A stretch of DNA of 64,000 nt from Caecitellus pseudoparvulus. Taxonomy: Eukaryota > Protista > Bigyra: Bicosoecida. Of this stretch, positions 1,211-39,575 are shown piece after piece. Numbering within the stretch: the stretch's first letter is position 1; every line of letters starts with the position of its first letter. The translations under genes and the position numbers were made by a program. Under the pieces are notes generated by a model, which was not told the DNA's origin, made no database searches, and saw only the letters and a program-made list of their open reading frames with translations. The DNA is taken from assembly GCA_965644315.1 (NCBI GenBank), contig CBFFRQ010000067.1, forward strand, positions 1 to 64,000. Reading direction: 5' to 3'.

Positions 1211-1430
1211 TTTCCAAATGTCAACCTAATCATAGGTTGTCAAGGGCTAACATAGCCTAATCCAGGCGCTCGTGCACCCCATTGTGGTGTGCACAGTGCA
1301 TTTGCATTGCTTTAGGTGCGCGGGTGAGCGGCAGTGCGAATTCCGCACGCTACGCCTCCCCACGCAGTGCTTTGTGCGATTCTCTGCCGGATCTGCACCA
1401 CTGACTGCACCATACCATTGCATCATCACA

Positions 1431-4400: not shown

Positions 4401-7400
4401 CCCTGGTGGTCAGCAGCAACTGAGGAGGGGAAGGCGGCGCAGCAGACTTTCAGGACATGCCTCGATACGGTCATGAAGATAGATGAACCCCAGGAACTCC
4501 CTGCTGATGACTGGACTCTACAGCACATGAACACTATGATTGCCCAAGCTGCGAAAGAAGCTCACACAATCTCAAGAGTGGCCCAGACTGAGCTCCCACA
4601 ACCGCAAATGGCCATCCGAACCCAAAGCCGAGTAAAGAAACGTATGACAGCGCGAGTGTCGCTCATCAAAAGAACTCGAGAGCGGGTCAACCGGCGTCTG
4701 GTGCTGATCCAATGTGGAGGAGCGATGGCCCCAGCCTCTCTCAAACTCCGCGTCCAGGAGCAACTCTCAATGCTGGACGAGGATGAGAGCAGCTGTCTGA
4801 GGGAGAGAAAGACGGCAATGCGCACCTGCACCCGGCTCACTGCCAAGCTGAGGAAGAAGACCCTTGCTTGTGTCAAAGCGCGCATCAAAGACCTGGTCAA
4901 GTCTGACCCCTTCAAGGCACACGTGCACATTCGGCGGCTTTCAGGGAGGCCGCGCAACTCGGGCAGCTCGGCAATATCTTCAGTGATGACAGACACAGGA
5001 TCCCTCAGCTCAGATCCTGATACACTACGGCAAGAGGTGGCGAAGCAAATGGGTGCCATCATCAGCAAACCAACTCTCTCTCGCACACCACTGAAGTATG
5101 GACTTGGTCGATTCCTTCCTTCATCAACTCCGGAGTTCCAGCCCCCAGAAGACTGGCTTCCAAACACATCAGAGGTCCTCCGCTGTATGAATGCACTAAG
5201 CCTGCACCGCCACCCCGGCTCAGGAACATTTCAGGCGGAGCATATCAAGTATGCAAGCACACCCTTTCGCCTTGCATATGCTCAGACCTTGATCAACACC
5301 CTGTCAAGCGGATCGTGCCCTGAACCGTACCATGATGGAATAGGCACCCTGATCCCGAAGAAGACAAGCGAGGTGGGCCGGCCAGCAACTTACAGACTGA
5401 TTGTCTGCAGGCCAGCACCTGCAAAGCTGTTCTTCTCAGCAGTGGCGGCTTCCCTAGAAAAGTGGATGTCCAGCTGGATATCTCCTGAGCAGGCAGGCTT
5501 CACAGCCCGACGCAACACTCACGAACAAGTCATCGCTCTCCAAGAAGCAGTCAAAGGGCACTTGCGACACTCACCTTCAACTCGACAAGTCCTCATCCTG
5601 TTCGTCGACTTCAAAGGGGCGTTTGACTCGGTCAGCCATTCTTGCATCATGGAGATCCTCAGAGATGCAAACGTCCCTGCTCCGCTCCTCAGTCTTGTCA
5701 ACAGCTACATGCACAACGCAGCCGTCTCTATCAACACGGCAGCAGGACTCTGCCCCCCCCTGCGTGTCACAACGGGTGTTCCACAAGGGGGTGCTCTTTC
5801 ACCACTGCTTTTCAAGATTGCAATCGACGTTGTCTCAAAGCGTTTGGCAGAACTCCCATATCAAGGGGTCCAAGGCACTGGTATCTCAACTCCTGACGGA
5901 TACCTTACGCATACACTGTATGCAGACGACTTGGCGTGCTTAGCTACCACCCCATCAGGACTACATCGAATGTTCAAAGAGGTCAAGACGATTGGAGAAC
6001 GATCAGGGTTGCTGATCAACCCCAAGAAGAGTGGGGTCATGATCATCCCTGGTCGTGATGGGACTTCATCACAACACACCAGCGACAGACAGAAGGCCTT
6101 GTGGAGATCGAAGCACCTGAGAAGTGGTGAAGAGCTGAAAGTGAACGGCACGCCCATCACACGAACTCCCACGTACATGTACCTCGGGGTCCCCATGGCT
6201 GAAAACCTCATCCGGTCCAGAGCACTTGCACTTGAAAAAGCGCAGATGGCCTGCACACATGCTGGGTTTTCCTGCGGAGCGGTCTTCTCAGGGGCCTGGC
6301 TAGGAGTGAAGCTGAAGAACCAGATTGGAAGAGCCATTGTCACATCCTCAGCGGACTATGTCCTGTGCACACAAGCCAACAGCCTCTTGATACCTCTGCG
6401 GCAAGTTGACCGAGGTGTATCCAAAGCACTGAGCAAGAGCCTTCTCTGTACACAGAGCTCACTCATGAGGCCACACAGTGCCGCAACACTCACACTGTGC
6501 GGTATAAAGCCAGCTCACATCAGATCATCACAGCTTCGTGTGAACCTCTTCCGGAAGATGCTTGCACGCCTCCACGATCGCTCTCCCTTGGCAAAGTCCC
6601 TCCTTCTCACCATTCCCCAAGCCATCGACATGCTGCCAGCAACAATCTCGACCGCGTTCGTCGTCCAAAGCACCGTTCAACTACAGCACCATCAAGCCAA
6701 GCAAACTCCGCTCCCATGGGCCTTGTTTGGGATTCTTGACCTGTGGATGTATGGATGCTTGCCCGATCTGAACGATCTGAAAGATGCATGCCTGGCAGAG
6801 GAGTCACGAAAGCAGCAAGCACTCACAGCAGTTCTTACATGCCTGAAGAAGCCTCCACACTCTGCGAAGATCGAGGTGATGGGCGTTGCGATGCCACCCC
6901 TGGCAACTATGGACACCCCTCCACAGTTTCAGTCACTCTCATCTTGGCAGACTCGACACCGTGTGGTTGCCTCATACCTGCACGTCGTGCAAGCCAAGCA
7001 AAGCAGAGAGGCTGGCTACTCCACGTCGGCAAAACTCCCAAGCACCATCAAACCGCGCCCTCATCACGTTGGAATTGGAGCACAGCACTTTACCATGCTG
7101 CACCCAATCCCATCTGGGATCAGCCCACTCTTGTGGGCATGTGCCGAGGACAAGCCTCTCTGCAACATGGTTCATCAGTGGCAAACGCTCCAGCTTCTGC
7201 ACGGGGGGGATGAGCCTACACCGTACCCGACCTGTCCACTATGTGCTGATGAAGTCCTTAGAGATCTCCACTGCCACATCATCCTTCACTGCCGAAAACT
7301 CAACACACTGAGAAAATCAGCAGTAGCAAGGATTAGTGACCTCCTCCGTGAATGCGAGGAACAGACGCATTCAGCACGGACAACAGTTCCAATTCCCCAA

Positions 7401-7934
7401 GCTATCTCCAGCGCAATCCGTGCTTGCCTCAATCACATGCACGTACCTGAGGAGCATGAAGAAGTCATGTACCGCCTGATACTCTGTGGTCAGTGGCCAT
7501 GGTACTGGGGACACAGCACCGCATATCAACTAGTGTCCAGAGAGGAAGCTAGTGTGTACAGCTACCCATACATCCTACACCACAAAGGCCTGAGACGAGT
7601 ATCACCACCCCGCTCATGGAAGGAGCTCCAACGCCAAGCTGCAAAGTTTGCTGGGCAAGCATGGCGTGCGGTTGTGTCAGCCCTCTTGCGGGACAGGCAT
7701 CCTGACAGATTATCTGTGCATACTCACGCCAGACACCTCTGGTGGTCTGTGTTTGGACGTGATGCCCCCTTCCCTGGCCACACGATTCCTGAACCGTCCG
7801 CGGTCACGAAGCAAACTCGAGCACCCAAAGCGATACGAGTCAGACGGTTCTTCCCTGCTCGAGCAGGGCAGGTACCGTCACATGAAAGGAAAGTCCAACG
7901 TACACTCCATGACATAGTTCAAAGAAGAAGGTAA
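1431..7934 (+). CDS. Retrotransposon polyprotein: N-terminal domain, putative cysteine protease, APE endonuclease, reverse transcriptase, CCHC zinc finger
   Basis: APE motifs SWNVRG, LTEP, YVPN, GDLN, LDHI, SDH. RT motifs EQAGF, FVDFKGAFDSV, GVPQGGALSPLLF, YADD (5919-5930), INPKKS, YLG. Finger CPLC..H....C. ATG 1431 (MSTKASQILG) was chosen because it aligns with the copy 2 ATG; the frame is open from 1272. Confidence 0.95.
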   Translation: MSTKASQILGVLFTEKCLEQHVSGRPRTGVLTALPRRGAARTFRLGGVDIDLSAAEDATFFVGQWLDIFGDRLEAEFPGAVAALACAKSALRESAPGRKDLLVTLASDSDGAATAKCLRIAAAAREDFTVTLPGGGSVGVVYPNTKQFTSARARVSLIAPPSAVKVAQKISQTATRIASETGDVSRVLKLVHAQLTHQQPKPQRTATHVGHSVSTVDDAPVDKPALTQDRAPSKAPAKTNKRTRRGKRTSRQTHVFPKTFADIIRGAAAHNQPVRKTTPSSSQGKAVPESCPTPEHVRLPTSRVQSRPSRWDSPAPRAPAAQGATNAESDSPVPTAAVDEEDESDFSIISLETCHRKPAKLASHKLPEESPLVGLLSNSTVFGDDEDKNCVQACLESASGEPVLQEQDFLLLQHAATINAAQKSLLHMLKQRHVQDADSSSSDVVITDAAVLPPLETEADRLEVMRSLVYRFAPSTHHLSLLSPPVLLPGLDLLLERMGRGYAMLKSPPDWNGKGISPRTLVDDAEQDTYLEGVLFAFGLSHPHAATWAHLQLILVDHERGVLHVWNPTQPKDHHDIPLNACMARLHAEGIDTVYRISSVPNHGMASPLRDRIKQALCSLRADFPPLPFLGPDGKLYSQTYIAAKKVRVCLPENRRTRKQAAVLEEVKQHDPLLEYIPTLKHHKLSRWSPSPPTPVGKHQRCRLALASWNVRGSCGRRLHDVIECVQSITSHTSLLALCLTEPGGRGTLDSAVLGLECFRPNPPDRPPGRSEVALLLDRRLKATPMHNLGLDGRCSVACSVATLPRPLAILATYVPNWHTAQRKKPVADPDTKLPHRQEVWQQLFDAVHRLKRTHMVVLLGDLNCHPGDNGMRCWTSDMWVNKTEIKDPTPDVSQLEEICLEGGLCPAGLAGSPTQARYGRVLDHILVSLDLRKVLCRPLLVTTTFSGHGQRRTGTRVFSDHHLLSTEVQVKLGTRSHARAPPARQATAPPWWSAATEEGKAAQQTFRTCLDTVMKIDEPQELPADDWTLQHMNTMIAQAAKEAHTISRVAQTELPQPQMAIRTQSRVKKRMTARVSLIKRTRERVNRRLVLIQCGGAMAPASLKLRVQEQLSMLDEDESSCLRERKTAMRTCTRLTAKLRKKTLACVKARIKDLVKSDPFKAHVHIRRLSGRPRNSGSSAISSVMTDTGSLSSDPDTLRQEVAKQMGAIISKPTLSRTPLKYGLGRFLPSSTPEFQPPEDWLPNTSEVLRCMNALSLHRHPGSGTFQAEHIKYASTPFRLAYAQTLINTLSSGSCPEPYHDGIGTLIPKKTSEVGRPATYRLIVCRPAPAKLFFSAVAASLEKWMSSWISPEQAGFTARRNTHEQVIALQEAVKGHLRHSPSTRQVLILFVDFKGAFDSVSHSCIMEILRDANVPAPLLSLVNSYMHNAAVSINTAAGLCPPLRVTTGVPQGGALSPLLFKIAIDVVSKRLAELPYQGVQGTGISTPDGYLTHTLYADDLACLATTPSGLHRMFKEVKTIGERSGLLINPKKSGVMIIPGRDGTSSQHTSDRQKALWRSKHLRSGEELKVNGTPITRTPTYMYLGVPMAENLIRSRALALEKAQMACTHAGFSCGAVFSGAWLGVKLKNQIGRAIVTSSADYVLCTQANSLLIPLRQVDRGVSKALSKSLLCTQSSLMRPHSAATLTLCGIKPAHIRSSQLRVNLFRKMLARLHDRSPLAKSLLLTIPQAIDMLPATISTAFVVQSTVQLQHHQAKQTPLPWALFGILDLWMYGCLPDLNDLKDACLAEESRKQQALTAVLTCLKKPPHSAKIEVMGVAMPPLATMDTPPQFQSLSSWQTRHRVVASYLHVVQAKQSREAGYSTSAKLPSTIKPRPHHVGIGAQHFTMLHPIPSGISPLLWACAEDKPLCNMVHQWQTLQLLHGGDEPTPYPTCPLCADEVLRDLHCHIILHCRKLNTLRKSAVARISDLLRECEEQTHSARTTVPIPQAISSAIRACLNHMHVPEEHEEVMYRLILCGQWPWYWGHSTAYQLVSREEASVYSYPYILHHKGLRRVSPPRSWKELQRQAAKFAGQAWRAVVSALLRDRHPDRLSVHTHARHLWWSVFGRDAPFPGHTIPEPSAVTKQTRAPKAIRVRRFFPARAGQVPSHERKVQRTLHDIVQRRR

Positions 7935-8090
7935 AAGAAAAAACAAAGAAAAAAACACAACGGAGATGTTCAGTCATGCTCTGCTCCCTCAGACCCATCT
8001 CCTGCGACATCACCATCACTAACCCCGCCCCCCATCTGCCTAGACCACTCAACGTCCATGAGAACGCAAAGTCACTCACTCTACCTCCAA

Positions 8091-9454
8091 CACAAGGGCA
8101 AAGTAGCCACGCAGCGGCCCCGACGCCCATTCAACAGCATGAGCACGACTACTGCCTTGCCCCCCACTGAGCCCAGCCCGTACAGTACCACTGAGTGTCC
8201 CTCGCTGCCCTTCAGCGCCTCCAACAGAGCCGCACAAGGCCCCTGAGCCGGCCAGCAGGCCCCCCCACACAAGGGCAAAGTAGCGACGCAGCGGCCCCGA
8301 CGCCCATTCAACAGCATGAGCACGACTACTGCCTTGCCCCCCACTGGGCCCAGCCCGTACAGTACCACTGAGTGTCCCTCGCTGCCCTTCAGCGCCTCCA
8401 ACAGAGCCGCACAAGGCCCCTGAGCCGGCCAGCAGGCCCCCCACACAAGGGCAAAGTAGCGACGCAGCGGCCCCGACGCCCATTCAACAGCATGAGCACG
8501 ACTACTGCCTTGCCCCCCACTGAGCCCAGCCCGTACAGTACCACTGAGTGTCCCTCGCTGCCCTTCAGCGCCTCCAACAGAGCCGCACAAGGCCCCTGAG
8601 CCGGCCAGCAGGCCCCCCCACACAAGGGCAAAGTAGCGACGCAGCGGCCCCGACGCCCATTCAACAGCATGAGCACGACTACTGCCTTGCCCCCCACTGG
8701 GCCCAGCCCGTACAGTACCACTGAGTGTCCCTCGCTGCCCTTCAGCGCCTCCAACAGAGCCGCACAAGGCCCCTGAGCCGGCCAGCAGGCCCCCCACACA
8801 AGGGCAAAGTAGCGACGCAGCGGCCCCGACGCCCATTCAACAGCATGAGCACGACTACTGCCTTGCCCCCCACTGAGCCCAGCCCGTACAGTACCACTGA
8901 GTGTCCCTCGCTGCCCTTCAGCGCCTCCAACAGAGCCGCACAAGGCCCCTGAGCCGGCCAGCAGGCCCCCCACACAAGGGCAAAGTAGCGACGCAGCGGC
9001 CCCGACGCCCATTCAACAGCATGAGCACGACTACTGCCTTGCCCCCCACTGAGCCCAGCCCGTACAGTACCACTGAGTGTCCCTCGCTGCCCTTCAGCGC
9101 CTCCAACAGAGCCGCACAAGGCCCCTGAGCCGGCCAGCAGGCCCCCCCACACAAGGGCAAAGTAGCGACGCAGCGGCCCCGACGCCCATTCAACAGCATG
9201 AGCACGACTACTGCCTTGCCCCCCACTGAGCCCAGCCCGTACAGTACCACTGAGTGTCCCTCGCTGCCCTTCAGCGCCTCCAACAGAGCCGCACAAGGCC
9301 CCTGAGCCGGCCAGCAGGTCCCCCCACACAAGGGCAAAGTAGCGACGCAGCGGCCCCGACGCCCATTCAACAGCATGAGCACGACTACTGCCTTGCCCCC
9401 CACTGGGCCCAGCCCGTACAGTACCACTGAGTGTCCCTCGCTGCCCTTCAGCGC
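8091..9454 (+). repeat. 176/177-bp tandem repeat (about 7.7 near-identical copies) in the 3' UTR of copy 1
   Basis: Unit starts (CACAAGGGCAAAGTAGC) at 8091, 8268, 8444, 8621, 8797, 8973, 9150 and 9327. The length difference comes from a C6/C7 run. Confidence 0.97.
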
Positions 9455-9756
9455 TTGCAGCATGGTCAAGCTTGCTCTGCGCCACTCAGCGTGCGCCTGC
9501 GAAACGTGATGAGAGAAACACAGGGCGAAGCACGAATATTTTATCTCAGGCGGCATCAGAAGGTGCTTTTATACTAGCACGCAGTGGGTGAGCGCTGCTG
9601 CATGCAGCCTGCTGGTGTATGCGTCCACCTGATGATCTGCGTTTCCTGTGAAACGCTGCCACAATTTCCGCCCACGCACCTGCTCCCCAACGTCAAGGAA
9701 ATGCCTACCGGGTAAAAACTACGCCATTTTTTATTTCAATATTACATATTTCTCAT

Positions 9757-10082
9757 TGAATTATTGATGTTGAAATTTTGAATTTGAACGAATCTGGCAA
9801 ATTGCCTGCAGTGGGGGCAGTTCTTCACATACAAGTTCCGTGAATGACACCAAAACAAGTTCTCCATCCAGGACTCACAAGACCTTCCCACCCGGAGCGG
9901 ATACTGAAGTATCCTAGCACATGGCGACATATAGAACGGACGAAAGTCTGTGTTTGTTGCAGAGCCATGCAAATGGTAGCCATGCTGATGTGAGTGACCG
10001 CGTAACGGTTTGTAACATCTACTGTGAAGCTCCAGCTGAACCGCACATGAACAAGTGTGGAAGTGAAATGCATTACATCTGA
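9757..10082 (+). ncRNA. Conserved structured 3'-terminal RNA element of copy 1
   Basis: Stems GGATAC/GTATCC, CATGGC(9920)/GCCATG(9979), CGGAC-GAAA-GTCTG, CCAT-GCAA-ATGG and CCGCAC/GTGTGG. They covary with copies 2 and 3. Confidence 0.8.
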
Positions 10083-10132
10083 CTAACCCTAACCCTAACC
10101 CTAACCCTAACCCTAACCCTAACCTCCCTAAC
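10083..10132. repeat. Interstitial telomeric spacer (CTAACC)7 plus variant TCCCTAAC
   Basis: Directly visible between the 3' end of copy 1 and the 5' end of copy 2. Confidence 0.98.
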
Positions 10133-10351
10133 TTTCCAAATGTCAACCTAATCATGGGTTGTGCATTGCTAACATTGCCTAATCCAGGCGCTCGTGCACC
10201 CCAGTGTGGTGCTGCACAGTGTTTGGGTTGGCGGTGTGGCGCGCGGGTGGCAGCTGTGCGAATTCCGCACGCCATCACACCAGCGCAAGCAGTGTGCACT
10301 CCACGCGGGAGCCTGCACCTGAGGACACCTGCATCACGTTCCATCATCATC

Positions 10352-13300
10352 ATGGAAGCCAAGACAAGCCAAGTGTTGGGTGCGCTCTTTGTGGATAAGT
10401 GCATTGCTGCGCGAGCAATGCGTGGGCCACGAACAGGCGGATTTACTGACATGCCGCGCCGAGGCGCTGCACGGACGTTCCAGCTTGGCGGAGTGCCGAT
10501 CAACGAAGACCCTTCAACATCTTCATCAACCATTCGTGATTCTTGGCTTGAAGCCTACGGAGAGGCGGCGGAGGCCCAGTTCCCTGGCATCTGTGCGGAA
10601 GTTGGGCGTGGTGCAGTGGCGTTGCGCCGCCCACAAGGAGCCCCAGCTGCCCTGCTAGTCTCACTCGGTGGAGGGAGTGACAGCGCAGAACTGGCACGGA
10701 GCATGCGGGAAGCAGCAGCACGTGAGGACGACTTCACTGTGCGCCTTGGAAGGGGTGGCTTCTTGGCCGTGGTGTTTCCAAACACACGCCAGTTTGTCGC
10801 TGCCAAGGCCAAGGTCCAAGCCAAAGCGCCAACCCTTGTGCTCAACGCTGCCCGGGAAATAATGCCGCTAGCTACCAGCCTTGCAGTCAACACGGGAGAT
10901 GTGTCGTCTATCGTCACTCTCGTGAAGTCTCACTTGCGTCAAGCTTCTCCAGCTGCGCACCAAGATCGCCAACACGTCCGACAATCCGTCCCCAAGAAGG
11001 GAGATGCTGCTGTCGACAAGGCGCCCATTCGACACAACATCAAGACATCCGCACAAACCCAACAGGCTCCAGGTAAACGCAAGAAGGTCAGGCGTGGTCA
11101 GCGCTCCAAAGCAAGCACGGCATCTACACATTCCAAAGTTGTACCAGGGCGAACCTTTGCCGACCTGTTCAAGACGCCTCCATCAGAAACGACTGCCCGA
11201 GAGAAACACCAACACGTGGTGCCATCAAGTCCTCCTGCAAGAATGCCCAAGCTGCAGACGGAGGCGGTGGTGCTTCCATCGTCACGAGTGCGAACTGGGC
11301 AACAAACGCGCTGGGACAAGCCATCAACCCTTGACCAAGATTCGAAGATGCAGGCACCCGTGTCGGAGGACAGCATGCCTGCATCTCAGACAAGTACCTC
11401 CACAGCAACAACACTCATCCTGTCGCCACCTGCGTCAACCCCTGAGTCGATATCAGAATCAGACACCTCGCTCAGCCTGTCTGCACCTGAAGCTGCACCC
11501 CATCATACTGTGAAGGTTGTGAGGATGAAGGATTGCCCCCGAGTCCCTGGATCACTTCCCACCCATGACATTCCAGCATCGTCACCTCTCGCACGCCTGC
11601 TCGCTTCCCCATGTGTGTACGGGAACAGAGACCAACGGCATTGCGTACAGGCCTGCTTGGAAACAGCGGCAGGGGAGAAGGTTTTCGAGACTGAAGACCT
11701 CGTGCTTCTCCAGCATGCAGCTACTGTCGAGGCAGGACAGCGAGCCTATCGGAACCTGCGTCGTAGAGCTGCTGCAAACACATCGGACTCCTCCAGTTCT
11801 GATGTTCAGTGTACGATGCCAGCAGGCGGTGTCATGTCAGACTGCGCAGAGGATCAACTGGAAGCTCTTGCTCGCTTGCTGTTTCGCTTCACACCAGAGG
11901 ACTCCCTTCTGCAAGCACAAGCACCACCTGTCCTTCTTCCCGGTTTGCATATGCTTCTCAACCGCATGAACAGTGGGCACCGTGCCCTTCTTGGTGGGAG
12001 TAAACTCCATGGGGGCATCTGTCCTCAAGCAGTGATGTACGAGGACGGCCAAGACAAGTACTTCGATGGTGTTCACTTTGCCTTTGCCCTACATCGTCTC
12101 CAACACACTGACACTGCTCACCTTACGCTGGTTCTGGTCGATCATGATCGAGGAGTGTTGGTTGTATGGAACCCAGACATTGCAGATGCAAGTGTTGAAG
12201 TGCCCTTCCACAACTGCATGGAACGTCTGCACGCCGATGCTGTAGAAATGGTCTACCGAGTATCATCGACCCCCATGGTGGGATCTCCAAGCCCCTTGAA
12301 AGAAAGACTGCGCAATGTGATGCAGTCGCTGAAGCAAGACTTCCCCCCTCTCCCTTTTGCTGCGGAAGATGGGGAACTCCACCTCAAAACGTACATCGCT
12401 GGACAGTTCACCCGTGTTGCCCTCCCAACTGGACGCCTGACTAGACAGCAGGCTTCTGCTCTAGCAGACGCAAAAGAGCATGACCCACTACTGAAGCTAA
12501 TCCCGCAAGACACAGATACAATGCCTCCACGCTGGGAGCAAGGCCCGTGTACCCCAGTGGGAAAGTCAGCCACAACTTCCATCTCCATGGTGTCTTGGAA
12601 TGTTGCAAGCTCCTGTGGTAACCACCTCCACGAAGTCATAGTCTGTGCGAAGTCGGCCTCCTCTCGATCTTCAAAGATGGTGCTCTGCCTTACGGAGCCA
12701 GGCGGACATGGGACCTTGGACACGGAGATCATGGGTCTACAATGCTTCAGACCAGGTCCACCTGATCGTCCACCAGGACGAAGTGAGGTCGCCCTGCTCA
12801 TCGACAGAAGACTGCGGGCTCAACGGATGGGGGACCTTGGTCTTGATGGCCGCTGTGTTGTTGCTTGCACCATTCCCACAACGCCAAAGCCTCTTGCAAT
12901 CATCACGGCATATGTGCCTAACTGGCACACAGCGCAGCGAAAGAAGCCGTTAGCAGACCCAGATACAAAGCTTCCACACAGGCAGCAGATTTGGGAACAG
13001 CTCACGAATGCTGTTCAACATCTGAGGACAACCCACATGATCACACTCATGGGTGATCTGAACTGCCACCCAGGTCAACACGGGGTAGCTTCGTGGGACA
13101 CGTCATGCTGGCGCAACCAATCTGGCATCCCCGACCCGACGGACGACGTTCAGGAACTTGCGACTGTGTGTGAACAGGCACAACTTCAGCCTGCTGGAGT
13201 CGGGGGACAGCCCACCCAAGCTACCTTTCAGAGAGTCTTGGATCACATCCTCGTATGTCCCTCGCTGCGGTCGCGGTTGGTAAAGCCCCTTGCTGTTGTT

Positions 13301-16300
13301 ACAACATACTCAAGCGCCAGGAAGAAGAACCACCGAAAGATGATCCTCAGTGACCACCACATGCTCACTGCCGGTGTTGTAGTCAAGCTGCCCCCCCGAC
13401 CCAAAGCCTCAAGACAACCTCCATCGACCCACTCTGTCCCCCCCTGGTGGGCATCGTCCACACGTGAGGGACTCAAGGCGCAGTACATGCACAGACGCCA
13501 TCTTGATGCATCTCTTGGGCCAGCAGACCTGCATGTCCCTGGTACTGGAGATGAGGCAGAAGCACTCCAAAGCTTGGACGCCCTCATTGCTACCAGTGCT
13601 CGAACCACGCATGCCCAGTGCAAGTCCACATCGCCTCAAATGATTCAGGCATTTGCTGACATACCACGACTCAGCTCCCTGAAGAAACGCTTGACAGCCA
13701 AGACGAGGTCCATACAGAAACAACTTGTGAAACTCCGTCGGCGCAAGCATCTGCTGCGGCATTCCTCACTGCTTAGCTCGATCGAGGCTCTGCGCAAGGA
13801 GGAAGAGCGGGAACACATGCTGCTTCAAGACCTGCATGCGACGAGGACTGAAAGGAGGCAAGCGATGCGCAGGTGCACCAGACTCGTGGCAAAGAAGCAC
13901 AAAGCCGCGAAGTTCCAGGTACAGCACCGCATCAGGGAGCTTACACTGGCCGACCCATTCACTGCGCATCAACACATCCGGAAGTTGGCTGGGAAGAAGC
14001 GGAAAGGCACAGTGTCCTGCATCCAGTCAGTGCTCGATAGCAACGGGACACTCATCACGGAACCTGCTCTCGTTCGGTCCACGGTGCGGGACCACATGTC
14101 CCAAATCATCAGCTCCCCCCCTTTAGAGCTTGCCCCACTGAAGTTCGGTTTGGCCCGGCTGCTGCCGTCTGCACAAGATGCCACCGCCTCTCATGATGCT
14201 TGGGTCCCAAGTGTGGACCTCATCATGAGAAAGATTCAGTCACTCAACCTACACCGCAACCCTGGCACTGGAAGCTTCCAAGCTGAACATCTGAAGTACG
14301 CCAGTGAAACCTTCAGGAAGAAGTATGCTGTTACCCTCCGCCAAGCCATCAGCACTGGCTCCTGCCCTGAGGAGTACCACTGTGGCGTCGGGACTCTCAT
14401 CCCAAAGACCGCTAGCCAACCCGGACGAGTACAGACATACCGCCTCATTGTTTGTCGCCCACCTCAAGCCAAGCTGTTCTTCTCTGTGGTAGCAGCTTGT
14501 GTGGAAGACTGGGTCCAAAGATGGATCTCTCCAGAACAAGCTGGCTTTACTCATGCTCGAAACACGCATGAACAGATACTGGCACTACAAGAAACTTCTG
14601 CTGCGTATCTTCGAACAAAGCCGGACGCCAGTGTCCTCATACTCTTTGTTGACTTCAGAAGCGCCTTCGATACTGTCAGTCACGGTGCGATCATTGAGAT
14701 CCTTGAGAGCGCAAATCTCCCGAGCGCCCTACTCGAATGTGTGAAAGACTACATGCGGCGAGCTTCTGTTGCCATCCACACGGGGCATGGCCTCTGCAAC
14801 CCCCTGCCTGTGACAAACGGTGTCCCACAGGGTGGAGCCCTGTCGCCTCTTCTGTTCAAAATTGCCATAGACGTCCTCTCTCACCGGCTCAGAGAACTAC
14901 CAAAGCAGGGGGTGGCGGGTGCAGGAGTACCCACACCCCGAGGCCGAGTCACCCATACGCTGTATGCGGATGATCTTGCCTGCCTGGCTACCACACCAGC
15001 TGCCCTCCACCGAATGTTTCTCGAAGTCAAATCTGTGGGCAGTCGTGTTGGACTGACCATAAACCCCAACAAATCAGGTGTCATGATCTTGACTGGAGCC
15101 CAACATGTCAGGGGCATATCAGCAACAGAGAGACGAAAGCTGGTCTGGAGATCCCGCTGGATCAAGTCTGGGGAGATGTTGAAAGTAAAGGGGGCGCCCA
15201 TCCAACGTACGAGTGTCTACTCGTATCTTGGTGCCCCACTTTCAGAAAACTTCAGCCGCACCAGGCTGCTTGCCTTGAAGCATGCAACACAATCTTGCAC
15301 CCGGGCTGGCTTCGCCTGCGGTGCCCTCCTTAGTGGCGTCTGGCTTAGTCCAAGTCTCAAACAGCGGGTCGGTGCTGCAGCTGTCAACAGCGCCGCCGAC
15401 TACATCCTTGCCTCTCAGGTCAGCAACTCCGTGCTACCTCTTCGAGATCTTGACCGAGGACTGGCCATTGCCTTCTCTAAGGCCCAGCTTGGCATGCAGA
15501 GTTCACTAGCTCGGATGCACAACTATGCAAAGTTGGCTGTATGTGGCATTCTGCCAGCACACATCCGAGCGACAAGGTTACGCAGCAACATCTTCAAAAA
15601 GTTGCTGAAGAACTTGCACAGCCCCACGCCTATAGTCAAAGCCCTGTCATCCAGCCTTCATCAAGCCCTGCGCCAGCTTCCGCCCACCATGGACATGGCC
15701 TTTGTCTTTCAGGCCAATGTCCGCCTGGATAGGAAAGGACCGGGAGGAATTCCAGACCCATGGGCCCTGCACGGTCTCCTTGACCTTTGGCTACATGGTT
15801 GCCTCCCTGATCGCCGGGCACTTGAGGCAGCTTGCCAAGAGCCAGCCGCAGACTCATCACCCGAAGCACAGGGGATCGACATCCTTGCTCGGCTGGATCC
15901 CCCTCCCCCCAAGGTCCAACTCCTTGGACTTGCTGCCCCGGAGCTGTCAGACCTCTCACGACCCCCAACCTTCCCAAACAAGACCTCTTGGTCGATCAGA
16001 CAACATGTAGTCGCCTCGTTCCTCCATGTTGCACAAGCGGTTCAATGCCAAGAAGTTGGCTACACCACCACTGGCGAGATGAAGCGCTCAAGGCGGCCTA
16101 AGGAGTTCCACGTTGGGCTGGGGGCCTGCTTCTTCACATGGCTCCACCCCATCCCCTCTTCTGTGAACCCCCTCTTCTGGGTCCATGAAGATGACCAACA
16201 GAGTCGAGTCAAGATCCACCTCTGGCAAACGCTGCAGGTCTTCAATGGGGGAGACATCCCCACACTCTTCAGCGAGTGTCCCTTGTGTCATGGAGTTTCA

Positions 16301-17077
16301 TGGTGTACACTCCATGAACATGTCCTCTTTGACTGCCCTCATTATAAACTGCAACCATCGCGGACGGACGCGATGGTTGCAGTGCGGAACTTTCTTGAGC
16401 GGTCAAATGACGCGGTGAGGGGGGTGGCCAACGCCCAACACCTTGAAGTGCCCCCCCCCCTCCTTGATGCTGTCGTCCGGGCTGCTGAAGGCCGCTTTGT
16501 GGGCCGACCGGGTCGCTTGATTCTTCTTCGCCTGCTACTATGCGGCCAGTGGCCCCACCGGTGGGGCCAGCCTCCATCACAGCAGCCTTGGAGTCCTGAG
16601 GCGGCCGCAGTCTTGAGCAACCCTCATGCTGCTCTTCGCGGCCCCTCAGGTCTTCTCCGTCCTCCCAAGTACTGGAAGCAAGCTCTGGCTGCCGCCACGA
16701 GCTTCTCTGTATCTGCGTGGGACGTGCTGGTAACGTGTATGCTTGGACGTACCTCACAGGTTGATCGTCATATCCAGGTGCACGCCAGGTATCTCTGGTG
16801 GGCTGCACATGGCCGCACGAGTCCACTCCCGGGCTTCTCCACTCCTGATCCCAGCGCTGTGAGAAAGCATACACGACATGTTCGCACGCGGCGCTTTGAG
16901 CGAACTTACTTTCCTGTCAGGGCTGAGCGCAGGCCCCCTCGCTCCTTCACGAGGCAGGCCACTCTCCTGGACTTTGGCCTCACACGGCCCGAAGCCCGTG
17001 ATCACCCTCCATCGCCCTCTTCCAACTCGCCCACGTCCTCCGAGGTATCCCTGGAAAGTCCATCGTCCTCTGAATAG
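10352..17077 (+). CDS. Retrotransposon polyprotein, paralog of 1431-7934
   Basis: SWNV, LTEP, YVPN, GDLN, LDHI, SDH; FVDFRSAFDTV, GVPQGGALSPLLF, YADD (14963-14974); CPLC..H....C. Start MEAKTSQVLG at 10352; the frame is open from 10154. Confidence 0.95.
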   Translation: MEAKTSQVLGALFVDKCIAARAMRGPRTGGFTDMPRRGAARTFQLGGVPINEDPSTSSSTIRDSWLEAYGEAAEAQFPGICAEVGRGAVALRRPQGAPAALLVSLGGGSDSAELARSMREAAAREDDFTVRLGRGGFLAVVFPNTRQFVAAKAKVQAKAPTLVLNAAREIMPLATSLAVNTGDVSSIVTLVKSHLRQASPAAHQDRQHVRQSVPKKGDAAVDKAPIRHNIKTSAQTQQAPGKRKKVRRGQRSKASTASTHSKVVPGRTFADLFKTPPSETTAREKHQHVVPSSPPARMPKLQTEAVVLPSSRVRTGQQTRWDKPSTLDQDSKMQAPVSEDSMPASQTSTSTATTLILSPPASTPESISESDTSLSLSAPEAAPHHTVKVVRMKDCPRVPGSLPTHDIPASSPLARLLASPCVYGNRDQRHCVQACLETAAGEKVFETEDLVLLQHAATVEAGQRAYRNLRRRAAANTSDSSSSDVQCTMPAGGVMSDCAEDQLEALARLLFRFTPEDSLLQAQAPPVLLPGLHMLLNRMNSGHRALLGGSKLHGGICPQAVMYEDGQDKYFDGVHFAFALHRLQHTDTAHLTLVLVDHDRGVLVVWNPDIADASVEVPFHNCMERLHADAVEMVYRVSSTPMVGSPSPLKERLRNVMQSLKQDFPPLPFAAEDGELHLKTYIAGQFTRVALPTGRLTRQQASALADAKEHDPLLKLIPQDTDTMPPRWEQGPCTPVGKSATTSISMVSWNVASSCGNHLHEVIVCAKSASSRSSKMVLCLTEPGGHGTLDTEIMGLQCFRPGPPDRPPGRSEVALLIDRRLRAQRMGDLGLDGRCVVACTIPTTPKPLAIITAYVPNWHTAQRKKPLADPDTKLPHRQQIWEQLTNAVQHLRTTHMITLMGDLNCHPGQHGVASWDTSCWRNQSGIPDPTDDVQELATVCEQAQLQPAGVGGQPTQATFQRVLDHILVCPSLRSRLVKPLAVVTTYSSARKKNHRKMILSDHHMLTAGVVVKLPPRPKASRQPPSTHSVPPWWASSTREGLKAQYMHRRHLDASLGPADLHVPGTGDEAEALQSLDALIATSARTTHAQCKSTSPQMIQAFADIPRLSSLKKRLTAKTRSIQKQLVKLRRRKHLLRHSSLLSSIEALRKEEEREHMLLQDLHATRTERRQAMRRCTRLVAKKHKAAKFQVQHRIRELTLADPFTAHQHIRKLAGKKRKGTVSCIQSVLDSNGTLITEPALVRSTVRDHMSQIISSPPLELAPLKFGLARLLPSAQDATASHDAWVPSVDLIMRKIQSLNLHRNPGTGSFQAEHLKYASETFRKKYAVTLRQAISTGSCPEEYHCGVGTLIPKTASQPGRVQTYRLIVCRPPQAKLFFSVVAACVEDWVQRWISPEQAGFTHARNTHEQILALQETSAAYLRTKPDASVLILFVDFRSAFDTVSHGAIIEILESANLPSALLECVKDYMRRASVAIHTGHGLCNPLPVTNGVPQGGALSPLLFKIAIDVLSHRLRELPKQGVAGAGVPTPRGRVTHTLYADDLACLATTPAALHRMFLEVKSVGSRVGLTINPNKSGVMILTGAQHVRGISATERRKLVWRSRWIKSGEMLKVKGAPIQRTSVYSYLGAPLSENFSRTRLLALKHATQSCTRAGFACGALLSGVWLSPSLKQRVGAAAVNSAADYILASQVSNSVLPLRDLDRGLAIAFSKAQLGMQSSLARMHNYAKLAVCGILPAHIRATRLRSNIFKKLLKNLHSPTPIVKALSSSLHQALRQLPPTMDMAFVFQANVRLDRKGPGGIPDPWALHGLLDLWLHGCLPDRRALEAACQEPAADSSPEAQGIDILARLDPPPPKVQLLGLAAPELSDLSRPPTFPNKTSWSIRQHVVASFLHVAQAVQCQEVGYTTTGEMKRSRRPKEFHVGLGACFFTWLHPIPSSVNPLFWVHEDDQQSRVKIHLWQTLQVFNGGDIPTLFSECPLCHGVSWCTLHEHVLFDCPHYKLQPSRTDAMVAVRNFLERSNDAVRGVANAQHLEVPPPLLDAVVRAAEGRFVGRPGRLILLRLLLCGQWPHRWGQPPSQQPWSPEAAAVLSNPHAALRGPSGLLRPPKYWKQALAAATSFSVSAWDVLVTCMLGRTSQVDRHIQVHARYLWWAAHGRTSPLPGFSTPDPSAVRKHTRHVRTRRFERTYFPVRAERRPPRSFTRQATLLDFGLTRPEARDHPPSPSSNSPTSSEVSLESPSSSE

Positions 17078-17623
17078 GCGGGGATCTGTGCGAGACAAAG
17101 CGCAGAAGCAGGCAAGCTTACGTATGTATCGTGGTAAGAACCACGGTCGTGGTTGACTGCGAAGGCGAGGCTGCTACATGCGCTGTCCTTGATGCGTTGG
17201 TTATTCTCTGTGAAAAGTTGGAAGGTTATTGGAAAGTAAATGTTGTCCAGTATACGTACCTGATGTCTTCGGGGTCCACATGAAAGGTCCTCTGGCGGCT
17301 CCTGCGATGGTGCGGGCGGAATTTGGGAGCGTGAACAGGTGGGCGCAGCGGTGCAACGCCGCAGCGCGGAACTTACAGGTCCGCCAGGTCCTTGATTGAT
17401 GATGGGGCTGGGTCATCTGTGAACAAGGGAGCATGCTGGTGTGTTCTTGGTGGGCGGGGGGCGTTGTTCCGGCGGTGCGCGCTGCTACCACCGGCGTGGT
17501 GCAGTGCAACACCGCCGTGAAACGCAACCCCCCAAAGGCGGCCACCGAGGCTCAGTTCAGCGCGCAGTGGCCCCAGGCACACGTGCAGTGCCTGGCGAGG
17601 GCCAGGAGATATGGGGGGATTCA

Positions 17624-17932
17624 GAATTATGATGCGAAGTGTGGACTGGGACGAAGTAAGAGTGGGCCCGGCCCCCTCTGGCTCAGCCGACTGAGCCGAG
17701 AGGGCGCGGGAGGGACAGTTCAGCACGTATGGGCGGGCGCGGGCGCGCCCTAGCAAGCGGCGGCTTATACAACGGACGTATGTCCGTGATGGCTGCAGAC
17801 CCACGAGAGTGGGAGCCGCTGTGGTGCCTACTACAGTGCATTCGTGTGCTGTGGTACGCAAGGCACCACGAGTGATGCCCAAGCTGTACCGTGCAAGAGT
17901 GTGCGGAGGCAAGTTGCAATGCATTGAGTGAG
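17624..17932 (+). ncRNA. Conserved structured 3'-terminal RNA element of copy 2
   Basis: Stems AGCGGC(17756)/GCCGCT(17815), CGGAC-GTAT-GTCCG, CCCAC-GAGA-GTGGG, GTGGTGCC/GGCACCAC and CCGTGCA/TGTGCGG, then AATGCATT. Confidence 0.8.
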
Positions 17933-17956
17933 CTAACCCCTAACCCCCTAACCTAA
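17933..17956. repeat. Degenerate telomeric spacer (CTAACCCC TAACCCCC TAACC TAA)
   Basis: Telomere-variant units with irregular C-runs between copy 2 and copy 3. Confidence 0.9.
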
Positions 17957-18275
17957 AAGGTGCAGAGAAGTGAGTTGGATTATGATGTGAAGTGCTGATT
18001 GACGAGCGCGCCACCTGGATGGACTCTCTGTGGTGTGGTTCAAGCTGGTCAAGGACGGGACTTTCTCCCCACAGGGCGTGCGTAGGACACGCCCTAGCAA
18101 GCGGTGACCTCTACAACGGTCGCAAGACTGTGTTGGTTGCAGATCCACGCAAGTGGAAGCCGCTGCAGCGCTTCTGCAGTGCATTCGTGCACGGCAGCGA
18201 GCGCCGCACGTGACGCCCAAGCCGAACCGCGCAAGTTGCAAGCGTGGATGTGAAGTGCAATGCATTGAACAGCTA
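17957..18275 (+). mobile_element. 5'-truncated relic (3' terminus only) of a third retrotransposon copy
   Basis: Aligns with 17624-17935: ATTATGATG.GAAGTG, CGCCCTAGCAAGCGG, TGCAGA.CCACG..AGTGG.AGCCGCTG, CAGTGCATTCGTG, TGCAATGCATTGA...AGCTA. Confidence 0.88.
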
Positions 18276-18643
18276 TGGCGTTTTGGTATGTATGTATAGC
18301 CGTTTAGGTGCAGGGCAGGTCATGGGCGGCTGCTGGGCGCCGTTGCGGGCAGGCGTGGCGACATGGTGGTGAGGCTCACACAAATGCCGCGCCGCACGGA
18401 GACCCCATACACCCTGAAGTAATTGAATTCATAGTTCTTGGCGGGTGACACAATCAGAAAGAATTCAGGCTTTCTTGGCGGGTGACAACAAGAACCAAAA
18501 GAATGCAAAGAAGATCAAGCACACAGGTCTGCAATCTGCAGAGTGTTCCTGTGCACTGGATCTTTTTTGTATCCTTCTGAAGGAGAGAACTGAACCTACG
18601 TTGCACGTATCCATTTCTTCGCTCAATGTGTCTGCGCAGTTGC

Positions 18644-21600
18644 TCAGGAGGGAGGCGGCTTGGCAGCGCTGTTTCTTCGCTGGGTCGCTGACGAACGCCG
18701 ACGAGCCGAGCCTGTGAAAGAAATGCGACCCCGGCTGTCAACAGACCGTCTCGCCGCTGATGAGCCCCGCCGGGTGCGCTGCTGCTCCGCCATTTCTGCA
18801 ATGGCCGCCATGTGCCCCATGCTCAGCCGGCGAGTGCGCTGAAGAGGGTTCTCAACCTCCTCTCCTTCTCTTCCGAGCTCCAGCCTTCCGGCAAAGCTTG
18901 AACGCGGACTGCCAGCACTGGGGGTCGAAGGTTCGCCTGAAACACCAATCATTGACCGACTGAGGTCTGCAAGCCCAGCTTGGGAGCTGCGCCGCGCTAC
19001 AGAAGTTGGCAGGTCTGCTAGCTGGCCTGGTGCTCGCGCTCGACTGTCTGGGAGATCAGACGTCTGCTTTGCCTGTTCTGACTGCGATGGCGTCGAAGCT
19101 TGCTTCTCAGCACCAGCTACTTCATGGCTGCGTGCCGAGGTGGGCTCTGCCTTGCCTGCCCGCAGAGGGTTCGTCGCGTTGCCGGCACCTGCCTCGGTGA
19201 TGGGGAGCAGAGATGCTTCCTGTAATGCCAGCAAAGATGGCGGTTGGGCTGGGCGTGTACTGGACTCCTCCTTTGTTGTGTCTGTCGTTTCCGCGTTCGC
19301 TCTCGCAGAGCTTGGTGTGGATGCCACGGACACGAGGGCGGCTCCCCTTGGACCCAAAGCCTGCAGCACGGCATCGACGTTGCTACGTGGACTACTCAGT
19401 CCACTACGCTGCACCATGCCACCAGAGAACGACAGCACAGTGCCCAAGCTGGTGGCAGTGCGTGGGGCGGCTGGCTGGATGCGACCACACCTCACCAGTC
19501 GCTGTGCCAGGGCTGATGCGATGTCCACGAACGTCGGCACTCGACTGTCCACGATCTGCCCCACAGTGCTGTCCCCTGCGCTGTCTGCACTGCCCAGCTC
19601 AGGCAAAAGAGCCCGGATGCGGGTTCCGATACGAGCCAGCACTGCCCGTGCCGCTGAGCTGTACCCACGCACCACCACCAGCAGAATGGCCAGCAGAATG
19701 ACGCCCTGTGAAATGTACAGGAAAGTATCTGTGACTCCCCGCACACCTGCAGGTGGGCGGAGGCTGTTCACGCCCACCAGCACCACCTCCAGCAGGATGC
19801 CGCCTTGGGCCATGACGTCCAGGTCTGTCAGCTCCTCCAGACACCAGGGCCGCCGCCACCGCACAAGGAGCAGGCTGCCCAGCACCACGCCACCCACAAT
19901 ACACAGGCGGAGCATGATGTCAGTGGTCAGCCACGTGACACATGCCACGACAGCGACGAGAGTGGTCTGCATCGCAAGGAATGTGTGTGTGGGCAGCAGC
20001 CATGCGAAGCCCCAGCATGCTGCCTGAGCTTGCTCAGCCTCAGCGACAGCAGCCTCCGCAATGGCACTGCTCTTATCGCCACCTGTGTTAGTCACAAGGT
20101 TCCGGGCTTGCTGTGGCGTCATCTGGATGCGGTAGCCGTTGGAGAGGAAGCCACGCACGGTGGCGCCTCGCAATGCAGCGGTGCTCGCTCCGCGCCACTG
20201 CCGCCAAGCCATGAAGGCGACGAAACCCACACTGCCTGCCAGAATGTGCAGTATGAGGGGGAAGATGAAGGGAACTGCAGCCTTCATGGTGCCAGCTGGT
20301 GTGTTGGCGTCAGCCAATGCTTCATGCTGAGGACGCAACCCAACCAACTCGGCGTGCAGCTGCAGCAGAGCTGGCAGCAGGCGGACGTACGCAGCTGCCG
20401 GCAGCAAAAGCGACACACTGCACCACACCCCACGCGTTGTGCCAGCTGCAGGCTTTGTTAGTCCCAGCGTCAGTGCGGATGCCATCAGCAGGAAGGCGCC
20501 CAGCGCCACCAGGAACAGGTTGCCGGCGTTGCCTGGACTGGATGGGTCGCCACCACCTGCGGCACAGGCCACAGATGGCAGGCTTGCCAAGCTGCTAGAG
20601 CCAGTTATGGCGGACAACACAGCCATGCCGCCTGCGCCCGCCGAGTCAGTGTCAGCATCGCGAGTGTAGAGCGTGCCGTTCAGATTTGAGGTTGGCTGAC
20701 CTGCCCACGGTCTGGCCAGCTCACATGCGCCAGCCCACTGGTGCAGGGAGTGTGCTGACGCTTGAAGAGAGTCTGGGCCCGATGGGGCAAGGATTGCGAT
20801 CTGAGCAGATATGCCGATGAACCAGAGCATGATCCTCAGTCCGCCGGTGAACAGGCTGGTGGTGAGGTTCTCTGGTGACTTGGCGTACTTGCGGAGACTG
20901 AGGACTGCCACCGCCAGAGCCATGATGACCTGCAACGCAGCAAAGCCAACGGCTGCGCCCGTTGGGGATATGCCAGTGTCGGGGCACTGCTTACAAGCTG
21001 AACAAGGTGACACAGCCGCCCAACCTGCGACACAAGTGCCACAAGCTGCTCCAGAGTGGCCTTGAGCGCAGCCACTGATGCCTGCCAAGGTACTGGACAC
21101 TGGACAAGCACCTCGGCGCGGACAAGGTAACAACTGAGCTGTGGTGGCGCTATCACATGCAGCATGGCACGTGGCCGAGCCGGGAAAGGCCAGATGAAAG
21201 GTGGAAGACGAGGTTCCTGCAGTCCCCACTTGCCAGGCCCAACTCGAGCCTGTTGCAGTGGGCAAAAGAGAAAATCGTTTCTCGTTGGGAGAAGGCATGG
21301 TTTCTTGAAGAACTGGGGAAAGGGAAGCAGTCTGCGAGCGAGTGCTTGAGGGTAATGCGCTCACAATGGCCAACGTCGTCCCCATCATAGAAGACGTGGC
21401 CGTGGCAGTAGAGGTGTGAGATGGCGTAACAGTCACAGAGGTAGTGGCCGTGGTCATTGCCGTGGCGGTGTGAGATGGCGTAACAGTCACAGAGGTGGTG
21501 GCCGTGGTCATTGCCGTGGCGGTGTGAGATGGCGTAACAGTCACAGAGGTGGTGGCCGTGGTCATTGCCGTGGCGGTGTGAGATGGCGTAACAGTCACAG

Positions 21601-38832: not shown

Positions 38833-39575
38833 TGCTTGATTTCCAGAGTCCTAATCGCCGCTCTTGCAGTGCTGACTCTCTCAGGGTTGATTTCCTGTCT
38901 CGACAGCGTGCGACCCCTTTCTCACTAACGCCTGGGGCAAAAAATCAAGGTTCGGCTCGTTGATCTCGCCAAAATGGCTAAAACAGTTCCTCAGGCATGG
39001 TACATTCTCTTTTTCCCGACAGTCAACTAGCGCAAACATAGAAAGATTCTAAGTCGATGTGTTGATCTCACAGGATTGACACAAGCCGTTGGTATCTCGC
39101 CTTGATCCACCAATCCGTGACGCACCAGATGTGACTGATCTCTGCGCCGGCCAGCGACAAGCTTGACGGATCAATCCTATTCTTGAAAAATGAAACAACC
39201 CATCTTTCCCCAAAACATCCTTGCATACAACTGAGATCCTTCACTTCCCACTGCCTCAAGGCAGCTTCGAACTTGTGTTGCTCCAGCGAGCCCGGCGGAA
39301 TTGCCCGTGCACCATCAAGCAGTGCAACCTGCTGCTGACCTCAGCAACAGCAAAGGGTCACCGCAACACGAGTCTTGTCCGCTGACGAGGCCCAGGTGCG
39401 ATACGTCAAGTACGTGCGTCAACTTGTTTTCAGGCCTCGTGTGTCGGAACTCTGGGAATGTGTGTGGCGTGGTGGGGGGAGCGTTGGCGCTTTCACTTGT
39501 CACAAATGCCCTGCACGGCCGTTCACCCCTCCACATAGGATACGCCAGCGTCTTGACAAACTTGTGCTAAACAAC

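Follow-up and report, generated by a model that had tools for sequence, protein, structure and literature searches.

A covarying nine-helix RNA module at the 3' ends of telomere-targeting LINEs in Caecitellus pseudoparvulus

Introduction

What is the folded RNA in which three consecutive units next to a telomere of the marine protist Caecitellus pseudoparvulus all end? These units lie in a 64,000-nt stretch of DNA (positions 1-64,000 of contig CBFFRQ010000067.1, assembly GCA_965644315.1; hereafter the window), in which a first-pass annotation had noticed a multi-stem RNA at the 3' terminus of each unit and had offered two roles for it, either a scaffold that binds a reverse transcriptase (RT) or positions its template, by analogy with telomerase RNA, or a self-cleaving or 3'-processing element. 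Here we describe this RNA as a module of nine helices, folded from the sense strand, that forms the last ~195-210 nt of the RNA of long interspersed nuclear elements (LINEs) inserted in telomere repeats, and we argue that it is probably a cis-acting 3' recognition and priming element for target-primed reverse transcription on telomeric DNA. LINE 3' recognition structures are a known kind; what is new is the architecture of this one, the telomere repeat that forms its tail instead of poly(A), and the host lineage.

Results

Architecture of the 3' module

The stems listed in the first-pass annotation are all present in the three copies, at or within a few bases of where it had placed them. Using covariance-model matches to define the extents of the module, we assign its helices (P) and junctions (J) as follows.

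9894-10088, + strand: module copy 1 (subfamily A)
9894-9898/10029-10033: P0 of copy 1
9899-9904/9909-9914: P1
9915-9919: J, UAGCA
9920-9925/9979-9984: P2
9926-9929/9955-9958: P3
9936-9941/9946-9951: P3a
9959-9963: J, GCAGA
9964-9968/9973-9977: P4
9987-9991/10015-10019: P5, with an inner hairpin
10035-10037/10062-10064 and 10041-10046/10055-10060: P6
10067-10074: palindrome AAUGCAUU
10083-10088: CUAACC
17730-17938, + strand: module copy 2 (subfamily B)
17730-17734/17877-17881: P0 of copy 2
17735-17740/17745-17750: P1
17756-17761/17815-17820: P2
17762-17765/17791-17794: P3
17772-17777/17782-17787: P3a
17800-17804/17809-17813: P4
17821-17828/17862-17869: P5
17883-17885/17908-17910 and 17889-17894/17901-17906: P6
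17933-17938: CUAACC
18073-18278, + strand: module copy 3 (subfamily F, decayed)

The first-pass annotation had described a folded plus-strand RNA with a three-way-junction core. Covariation and G-U pairs uphold this description, and the core as a whole is a four-way junction of which the three-way junction is one arm. What had been missed is P0, a covarying long-range helix of 4-5 bp that RNAalifold found on a MAFFT alignment and that pairs GGAGC/GGGGC, just 5' of P1, with GCUCC/GCCCC downstream of the long variable stem P5. P0 closes the four-way junction, the arms of which are hairpin P1, the three-way-junction domain and P5; the helices of the three-way-junction domain are P2, hairpin P4 and P3, the last of which contains an asymmetric internal loop and carries hairpin P3a. 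Downstream of the junction come, in order, the bulged hairpin P6, a palindrome of 8-10 nt, (C)AAUGCAUU(G), a spacer of 4-8 nt and CUAACC, the 3' ends of the window units reading ...AUGCAUU, 4-8 nt, CUAACC and then telomere repeats. Folded alone, copy 1 adopts the same helices (-60.9 kcal/mol, z = -2.7; antisense z = -1.3).

Copies of the module in the genome sort into seven subfamilies, A to G, and many unpaired bases are fixed in all seven: the P3 internal loop keeps UA.AA and G.U, the stretch from P3 to P4 keeps GC..A, GU.gA precedes the 3' strand of P0, and the tail has UGCA.U. The junctions TAGCA and GCAGA had been called invariant, which is true of the three window copies but not of subfamilies E and G, where both vary. 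Loop sequences differ among copies, and the GNRA hairpin loops read from the window are not conserved as GNRA. The 7-bp leading hairpin attributed to copy 3 (GGGCGTG-CACGCCC) is an artefact of two substitutions in a decayed copy, the intact relative of which lies on the ENA contig L051. A by-eye check for pseudoknot pairing of UAGC or CAGA with the tail found none that is conserved across subfamilies.

An Rfam search at the gathering threshold gave no match anywhere in the window, and a search of positions 9500-18600 at E up to 10 returned five weak matches, all of which fell outside the module; no ribozyme or other structured-RNA family was among them. Among the families covered were the R2 element, hammerhead, HDV-like, twister, pistol, hatchet, xrRNA and telomerase RNAs. 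The earlier judgement by eye that the module does not match the hammerhead, HDV, twister or pistol consensus is therefore borne out by covariance models, and the novelty that an Rfam hit would have removed stands, there being no relevant match in either search. ARAGORN found no tRNA-like match in 9500-18600; a tRNA-like 3' structure was accordingly rejected, no cloverleaf with a T-loop having been recognised.

Compensatory change supports a sense-strand fold

To gather copies we searched the organism's own genome (30.6 Mb in 215 contigs) with BLAST-type searches and a 26-nt junction pattern, which alone has more than 100 exact matches. In subfamily C the module combines the 5' half of B with another long stem. 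A covariance model built on 34 distinct copies yields at least 150 full-length matches (~144-220 bits, E down to 7e-56), and on each of the eight contigs longer than 300 kb that were checked, those of known length, the matches lie no more than ~25 kb from an end.

In the unbiased MAFFT alignment of the 34 copies (A3; 48 pairs, 1604 pair cells), 95.9% of the cells hold standard pairs, compared with 31-45% when partners are slid by 1-3 columns. Double-sided change is present in 26 of the 48 pairs, the covariation score of 0.436 compares with 0.138 at most when partners are slid, and none of 500 shuffles reaches the observed values. The covariation first proposed from three copies thus persists in a larger alignment, where the slid and shuffled controls both fail. 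A model-based alignment (A5) gave 96.5% paired cells with double-sided change in 25 of 48 pairs, and when each subfamily was reduced to one majority sequence the change was still seen in 26 of 48. Three clear compensatory changes fall inside single subfamilies, one at a P5 pair in C (G-C exchanged with A-U) and two at P6 pairs in G. Moreover, G-U pairs make up 11% of the pair cells and would be A-C on the other strand, indicating that the fold is specific to the sense strand.

As measured by sequence identity, constraint is confined to the module relative to the upstream 3' region. Modules of different subfamilies are 65-76% identical, whereas the 200 nt directly upstream are 55-61% identical, which is the level of shuffled sequence, and conservation starts exactly at P0 and runs to CUAACC, after which come the telomere repeats. 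Single-base insertions and deletions separate the modules of the subfamilies, which rules out a coding explanation.

The carriers are LINEs arrayed below the telomere

The window starts at a chromosome end, and three co-oriented units (element A, element B and a fragment of subfamily F) adjoin its terminal telomere tract.

1-1210, no strand: terminal telomere tract (TAACCC)x201, 100% matches in Tandem Repeats Finder
1211-10088, + strand: full-length element, subfamily A; 5' end CTTTCCAAATG..., single open reading frame (ORF) at 1272-7934
ORF of element A: 2220 aa, with an apurinic/apyrimidinic endonuclease (APE) at residues 760-1015 and RT at residues 1361-1631
10083-10131, + strand: inter-element telomere repeats, (CTAACC)x7 plus a degenerate unit, from the 3' end of A to the 5' end of B
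10132-17938, + strand: full-length element, subfamily B; single ORF at 10154-17077
ORF of element B: 2307 aa, APE at residues 843-1068 and RT at residues 1416-1651; 45% identical to the A ORF
17933-17958, + strand: short, degenerate telomere tract that separates element B from the truncated F fragment
17959-18278, + strand: 5'-truncated, decayed fragment of subfamily F, 320 nt, adjoining unique subtelomeric DNA

The carriers of the module are telomere-targeting APE+RT retrotransposons without long terminal repeats (non-LTR), standing in head-to-tail arrays below the telomere. The A and B ORFs encode an APE-type endonuclease (Exo_endo_phos) followed by an RT (RVT_1) whose nearest counterparts in the PDB are LINE-1 ORF2p (E 2e-18) and R2. 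Both ORFs keep the endonuclease motifs WNV, LTEPGG, GDLN and SDHH, making it likely that the enzyme nicks the telomere repeat. The long protein-coding elements with the module span 7.7-8.9 kb. ORF identity is 43% between E and B and 58% between B and F. CCCTAA repeats flank the elements on both sides, their 5' ends face the chromosome tip, short telomere tracts separate the units, and none of the three window units carries poly(A).

The 3' untranslated region (UTR) of element A contains a 177-bp tandem repeat (7.7 copies, 99% identical, 8090-9454) that is absent from element B. The F fragment, whose intact full-length counterpart is the L051 element, terminates in CTA fused straight to unique DNA, without a telomere tract (18270-18280). 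It is the innermost and oldest unit, and its tract-less junction could reflect either the healing of a broken end or a later loss of repeats.

The genome also contains a TERT gene, seen as a match to the telomerase RNA-binding domain (79 bits; G000:C77:25738-26142, L078) inside a 1389-aa open frame. The elements therefore coexist with telomerase, as SART/TRAS do in the silkworm.

All 3' junctions carry a telomere-repeat tail

Each of the 90 distinct 3' junctions has at least CTAA(CC) after the module and never poly(A), the interval from the end of the module to CTAACC being 0-8 nt. The telomere-like tract is 6 nt or shorter at 13 junctions, 7-12 nt at 30, 13-24 nt at 28, 25-48 nt at 10 and longer at 9. 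Because the first CTAA(CC) is always there while the tract beyond it varies, CUAACC belongs to the element; it is found in all intact copies and is complementary to GGTTAG. Many units are severely truncated at the 5' end, some keeping just 45-170 nt of the module, a pattern typical of abortive target-primed reverse transcription.

A gag-only partner keeps the module

Subfamily E, the commonest variant in the genome, is 2928 bp long, often tandem, and found directly under the telomere.

L071 1187-4114 (= G000:C43), repeated at 4115-7043, and also on L072: subfamily E copies

Its 748-aa ORF is homologous only to the N-terminal 800 residues (a third) of the long ORF, and includes neither an APE endonuclease nor an RT. 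E nevertheless keeps the common 5' end, along with a module version of its own that covaries. That an element without an RT spreads and yet retains the module is the classic argument that the module is a handle for an RT acting in trans.

A putative recognition and priming element

Three features place the module with the 3'-terminal recognition elements of stringent-type LINEs: its position as the last feature of the RNA, abutting the target junction; compensatory conservation of its structure among lineages whose proteins are only 43-58% identical; and its presence on non-autonomous elements that would depend on a LINE RT (subfamily E). Stringent-type LINE proteins recognise a 3' stem-loop (PMC4176376), and SART1Bm requires stem-loops in its 3' UTR and has an RNA with telomere-like bases that anneal to the target (PMC7265360). 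Of the roles proposed in the first-pass annotation, an RT-binding or template-positioning scaffold is the best fit to the context, considering that the module is 3'-terminal on APE+RT elements, is followed by target-complementary CUAACC and is kept by an RT-less partner, although the analogy with telomerase RNA is partial.

We propose that the RT of the element, possibly together with the N-terminal protein, would recognise the geometry of the junctions and the fixed unpaired bases. The CUAACC(n) tail would then anneal to a 3'-OH on the TTAGGG strand, which may be made by the APE endonuclease of the element or be provided by a natural overhang, and the RT would copy through the module into the element, leaving telomerase to re-cap the new end later. 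The outcome of such a cycle would be a head-to-tail array in which 5' ends point towards the chromosome tip and short telomere tracts separate the units, which is the layout that we observe. The gag-only subfamily E would be mobilised in trans through the same handle.

Several points weigh against this proposal. The copies are all from a single species or strain cluster, which leaves about seven lineages behind the covariation. Since loop sequences vary, it is the junction bases on which recognition would have to depend, and the E module departs from every autonomous subfamily at some of the fixed ones (AAGACA for UAGCA, GCAAA for GCAGA). No module was found at the nearest protein relatives elsewhere (33-34% identity). 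Finally, RNA support is thin: assembled Logan contigs of one marine metatranscriptome overlap 17624-17796, which is weak evidence of transcription and silent on RNA ends.

Alternative roles for the module

A different and unlikely role for the fold and its CUAACC tail would be that of a built-in telomerase-RNA surrogate, which would dock the RT of the LINE on a natural G-strand overhang with no need for a cut by the endonuclease. Like telomerase RNA, the module comes with a telomere-repeat complement able to pair with the G-strand end and so could act as a template, and telomerase RNA likewise has a three-way junction (CR4/5) that is bound by its RT, as the module putatively is. Unlike in telomerase RNA, however, the repeat lies 3' of the fold, the RT would copy through the fold and there is no template boundary; the module is, moreover, part of a protein-coding element and copied into DNA at each insertion rather than a stand-alone non-coding gene. 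If the surrogate role were true, the family and its gag-only partner would be a second, retrotransposon-based system of end extension beside telomerase, operating at most or all chromosome ends, and an independent reinvention of the Drosophila solution.

The element RNA lacks poly(A), has a compact GC-rich fold at its very 3' end, and keeps that fold even in the protein-only partner E, all of which would also suit a module whose main task is to protect or localise the RNA, as a block to 3'-to-5' exonucleases or as a nuclear or telomere targeting signal, rather than to recruit the RT. We regard this as quite unlikely as the main function, given that the module bears no likeness to the stabilising elements in Rfam (xrRNA, ENE triple helix) and has no A-rich or U-rich tracts, and that a CUAACC tail 3' of the fold would stay exposed. 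A protective or localising role is compatible with RT recruitment, and the two may coexist.

Because the elements lack poly(A) and stand in tandem, some mechanism of 3'-end formation is needed, and fixed unpaired bases in a multi-helix junction are a typical ribozyme feature. The module might then be a new self-cleaving ribozyme, or the substrate of a cellular RNase, that is cut just after CUAACC in read-through transcripts to leave a non-polyadenylated end, but we consider this improbable. Every retrotransposed copy carries the whole module and CTAACC, which means that template RNAs are not cut inside the module, and the telomere tracts that follow it vary from 4 to more than 80 nt. Nor is a precise RNA end required, since the RTs of site-specific LINEs (R2, SART1) can initiate internally on read-through RNA (PMC7265360). 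For the self-cleaving or 3'-processing element of the first-pass annotation we found no positive evidence, with no Rfam ribozyme match even at E up to 10 and no tRNA-like match; that the junction core is a new class of self-cleaving ribozyme trimming read-through transcripts of the array is less likely than the surrogate role described above.

In Drosophila the 3' end of a HeT-A unit acts as the promoter for the next unit downstream, and although the head-to-tail order here leaves just 50-100 bp from each module to the 5' end of the unit downstream, it is very improbable that the module is conserved as promoter DNA with incidental helices: a DNA motif would not explain 26 compensatory pairs and G-U pairs, many modules precede truncated units or unique DNA, and the 5' UTR, nearly invariant over ~105 nt, is a better promoter candidate.

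Comparison with known systems

The system to which we liken the recognition role of the module is the R2 3' UTR element (R2_retro_el), which marks R2 RNA for its own RT and sets the start of target-primed reverse transcription. Both are conserved multi-helix folds at the 3' end of a site-specific non-LTR element, both drift in sequence while keeping their pairing, and both do without poly(A). They share no sequence or model similarity, and R2 uses a restriction-like endonuclease on 28S ribosomal DNA, whereas the elements described here have an APE-type enzyme, a telomere-repeat target and an RNA that ends in a target-complementary repeat.

SART1 and TRAS1 of Bombyx mori are, like these elements, APE+RT LINEs that lie in one orientation in telomere repeats, beside an active telomerase gene in the silkworm and beside a TERT gene here. 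They need 3' UTR stem-loops and have telomere-like RNA bases that anneal to the nicked target (PMC7265360), as we propose for the present elements. They differ in having two ORFs and poly(A), compared with one ORF of 2200-2300 aa and terminal CUAACC without poly(A) in this marine protist, and the fold of the module is unrelated to theirs.

The eel LINE UnaL2 mobilises the non-autonomous UnaSINE1 through a common 3' end in which a stem-loop and a short terminal repeat form the recognition signal, and subfamily E resembles UnaSINE1 as a non-autonomous partner that would be mobilised in the same way. The stringent tail of zebrafish ZfL2 likewise combines a 3' stem-loop with a short terminal repeat as recognition signal (PMC4176376). 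The stem-loops of these tails are, however, single small hairpins rather than a nine-helix fold of ~200 nt, and the partner here is not a short interspersed element but a 2.9-kb element encoding the N-terminal protein.

With HeT-A, TART and TAHRE of Drosophila the family shares head-to-tail arrays with 5' ends tipward, variable 5' truncation, and an abundant gag-only element beside autonomous gag+pol elements. The Drosophila elements are an unrelated family, end in poly(A) and occupy chromosome ends without telomerase repeats, whereas the present units are capped and separated by telomerase repeats in a genome that has TERT. The Penelope-like Athena and Coprina elements are endonuclease-deficient, in contrast to the intact-looking APE and the LINE RT, neither TERT- nor Penelope-like, of the present elements, and, also unlike in Athena/Coprina, the Rfam search detected no hammerhead motif at the module. 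Athena RNAs likewise end in reverse-complement telomere repeats, according to a reference given in PMC10088271. The telomeric retrotransposons listed in that 2023 paper include SART/TRAS, GilM/GilT, Zepp, MoTeR, Tx1-1_ACar, Athena and HeT-A/TART/TAHRE, and no marine-protist element is named in the list (PMC10088271).

Relatives outside the genome

Among our searches the sole module outside the organism's own genome was that of L051, a complete CCCTAA-flanked element of subfamily F that is nearly identical to copy 3 and hence comes from the same or a very close organism. A scan of a metagenome collection with a 24-position structure-anchored pattern gave 3 matches, all by chance in bacterial coding DNA. 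An exhaustive search of 1.8 billion representative proteins gave only 8 below 1e-30, and the nearest distinct relatives outside the organism's own elements are 33-34% identical. One of these (P0004, 34% identity, from a coral metagenome) has neither a module nor a telomere repeat in its 470-nt 3' flank, and another, P0005, runs off its contig. The candidate P0002/L052 was rejected as a relative, being an unrelated LINE. This 2545-aa RT element of another organism begins right after a sequence like U2 small nuclear RNA (L052 1-60, Logan contig SRR21069135_89411) and may be a U2-targeting LINE.

Other features of the elements and the subtelomere

The first ~105 nt of the 5' UTR (CTTTCCAAATGTCAACCTAATCA...), together with a GTGCGAATTCCGCAC hairpin, are nearly invariant among A, B, F and E.

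Window 1211-1320 and 10132-10240; L051 53-160; L071 1187-1295: conserved 5' UTR stretch

This stretch is conserved far more than the 3' module, despite proteins that are 43-58% identical, and could be a promoter, a signal for 5' processing or one for second-strand priming. A near-perfect long hairpin in the 5' UTR of element B (10196-10312) gives weak, sub-threshold matches to microRNA precursors in Rfam.

The N-terminal protein (residues 470-805 of ORF B, 11561-12568) and its homologues have an invariant AHL.L.L.DH..G.L..WNP ... C motif. A Pfam search of this protein found no domain, its AlphaFold model is poor (predicted local distance difference test score, pLDDT, 43) and Foldseek found no significant match, the best being to papain-like cysteine proteases and deubiquitinases (Josephin, GtgE, USP7/28); the protein may be a polyprotein-processing protease.

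Further genes lie in the subtelomeric DNA beyond the array.

18644-24061, - strand: 1805-aa BspA-type leucine-rich-repeat protein with internal 54- and 72-bp tandem repeats
36994-38832, - strand: Harbinger-type DDE transposase (DDE_Tnp_4)
39375-42782, + strand: 1136-aa Sel1-repeat protein

Significance

Site-specific LINEs recognise their own RNA by its structured 3' end, and few such ends have been defined with good covariation. With nine helices, 26 compensatory pairs and fixed junction bases, the module is ready for binding and cryo-electron microscopy work on an APE-type RT, a kind of enzyme that is of interest as a programmable insertion tool. The elements that carry it represent a new telomere-targeting LINE lineage in a marine protist, with nearest outside relatives that are ~33% identical. 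Their gag-only partner arrangement is known mainly from Drosophila, yet here it stands beside telomerase repeats and a TERT gene. In this natural system the sharing of chromosome ends between retrotransposons and telomerase can be tested directly.

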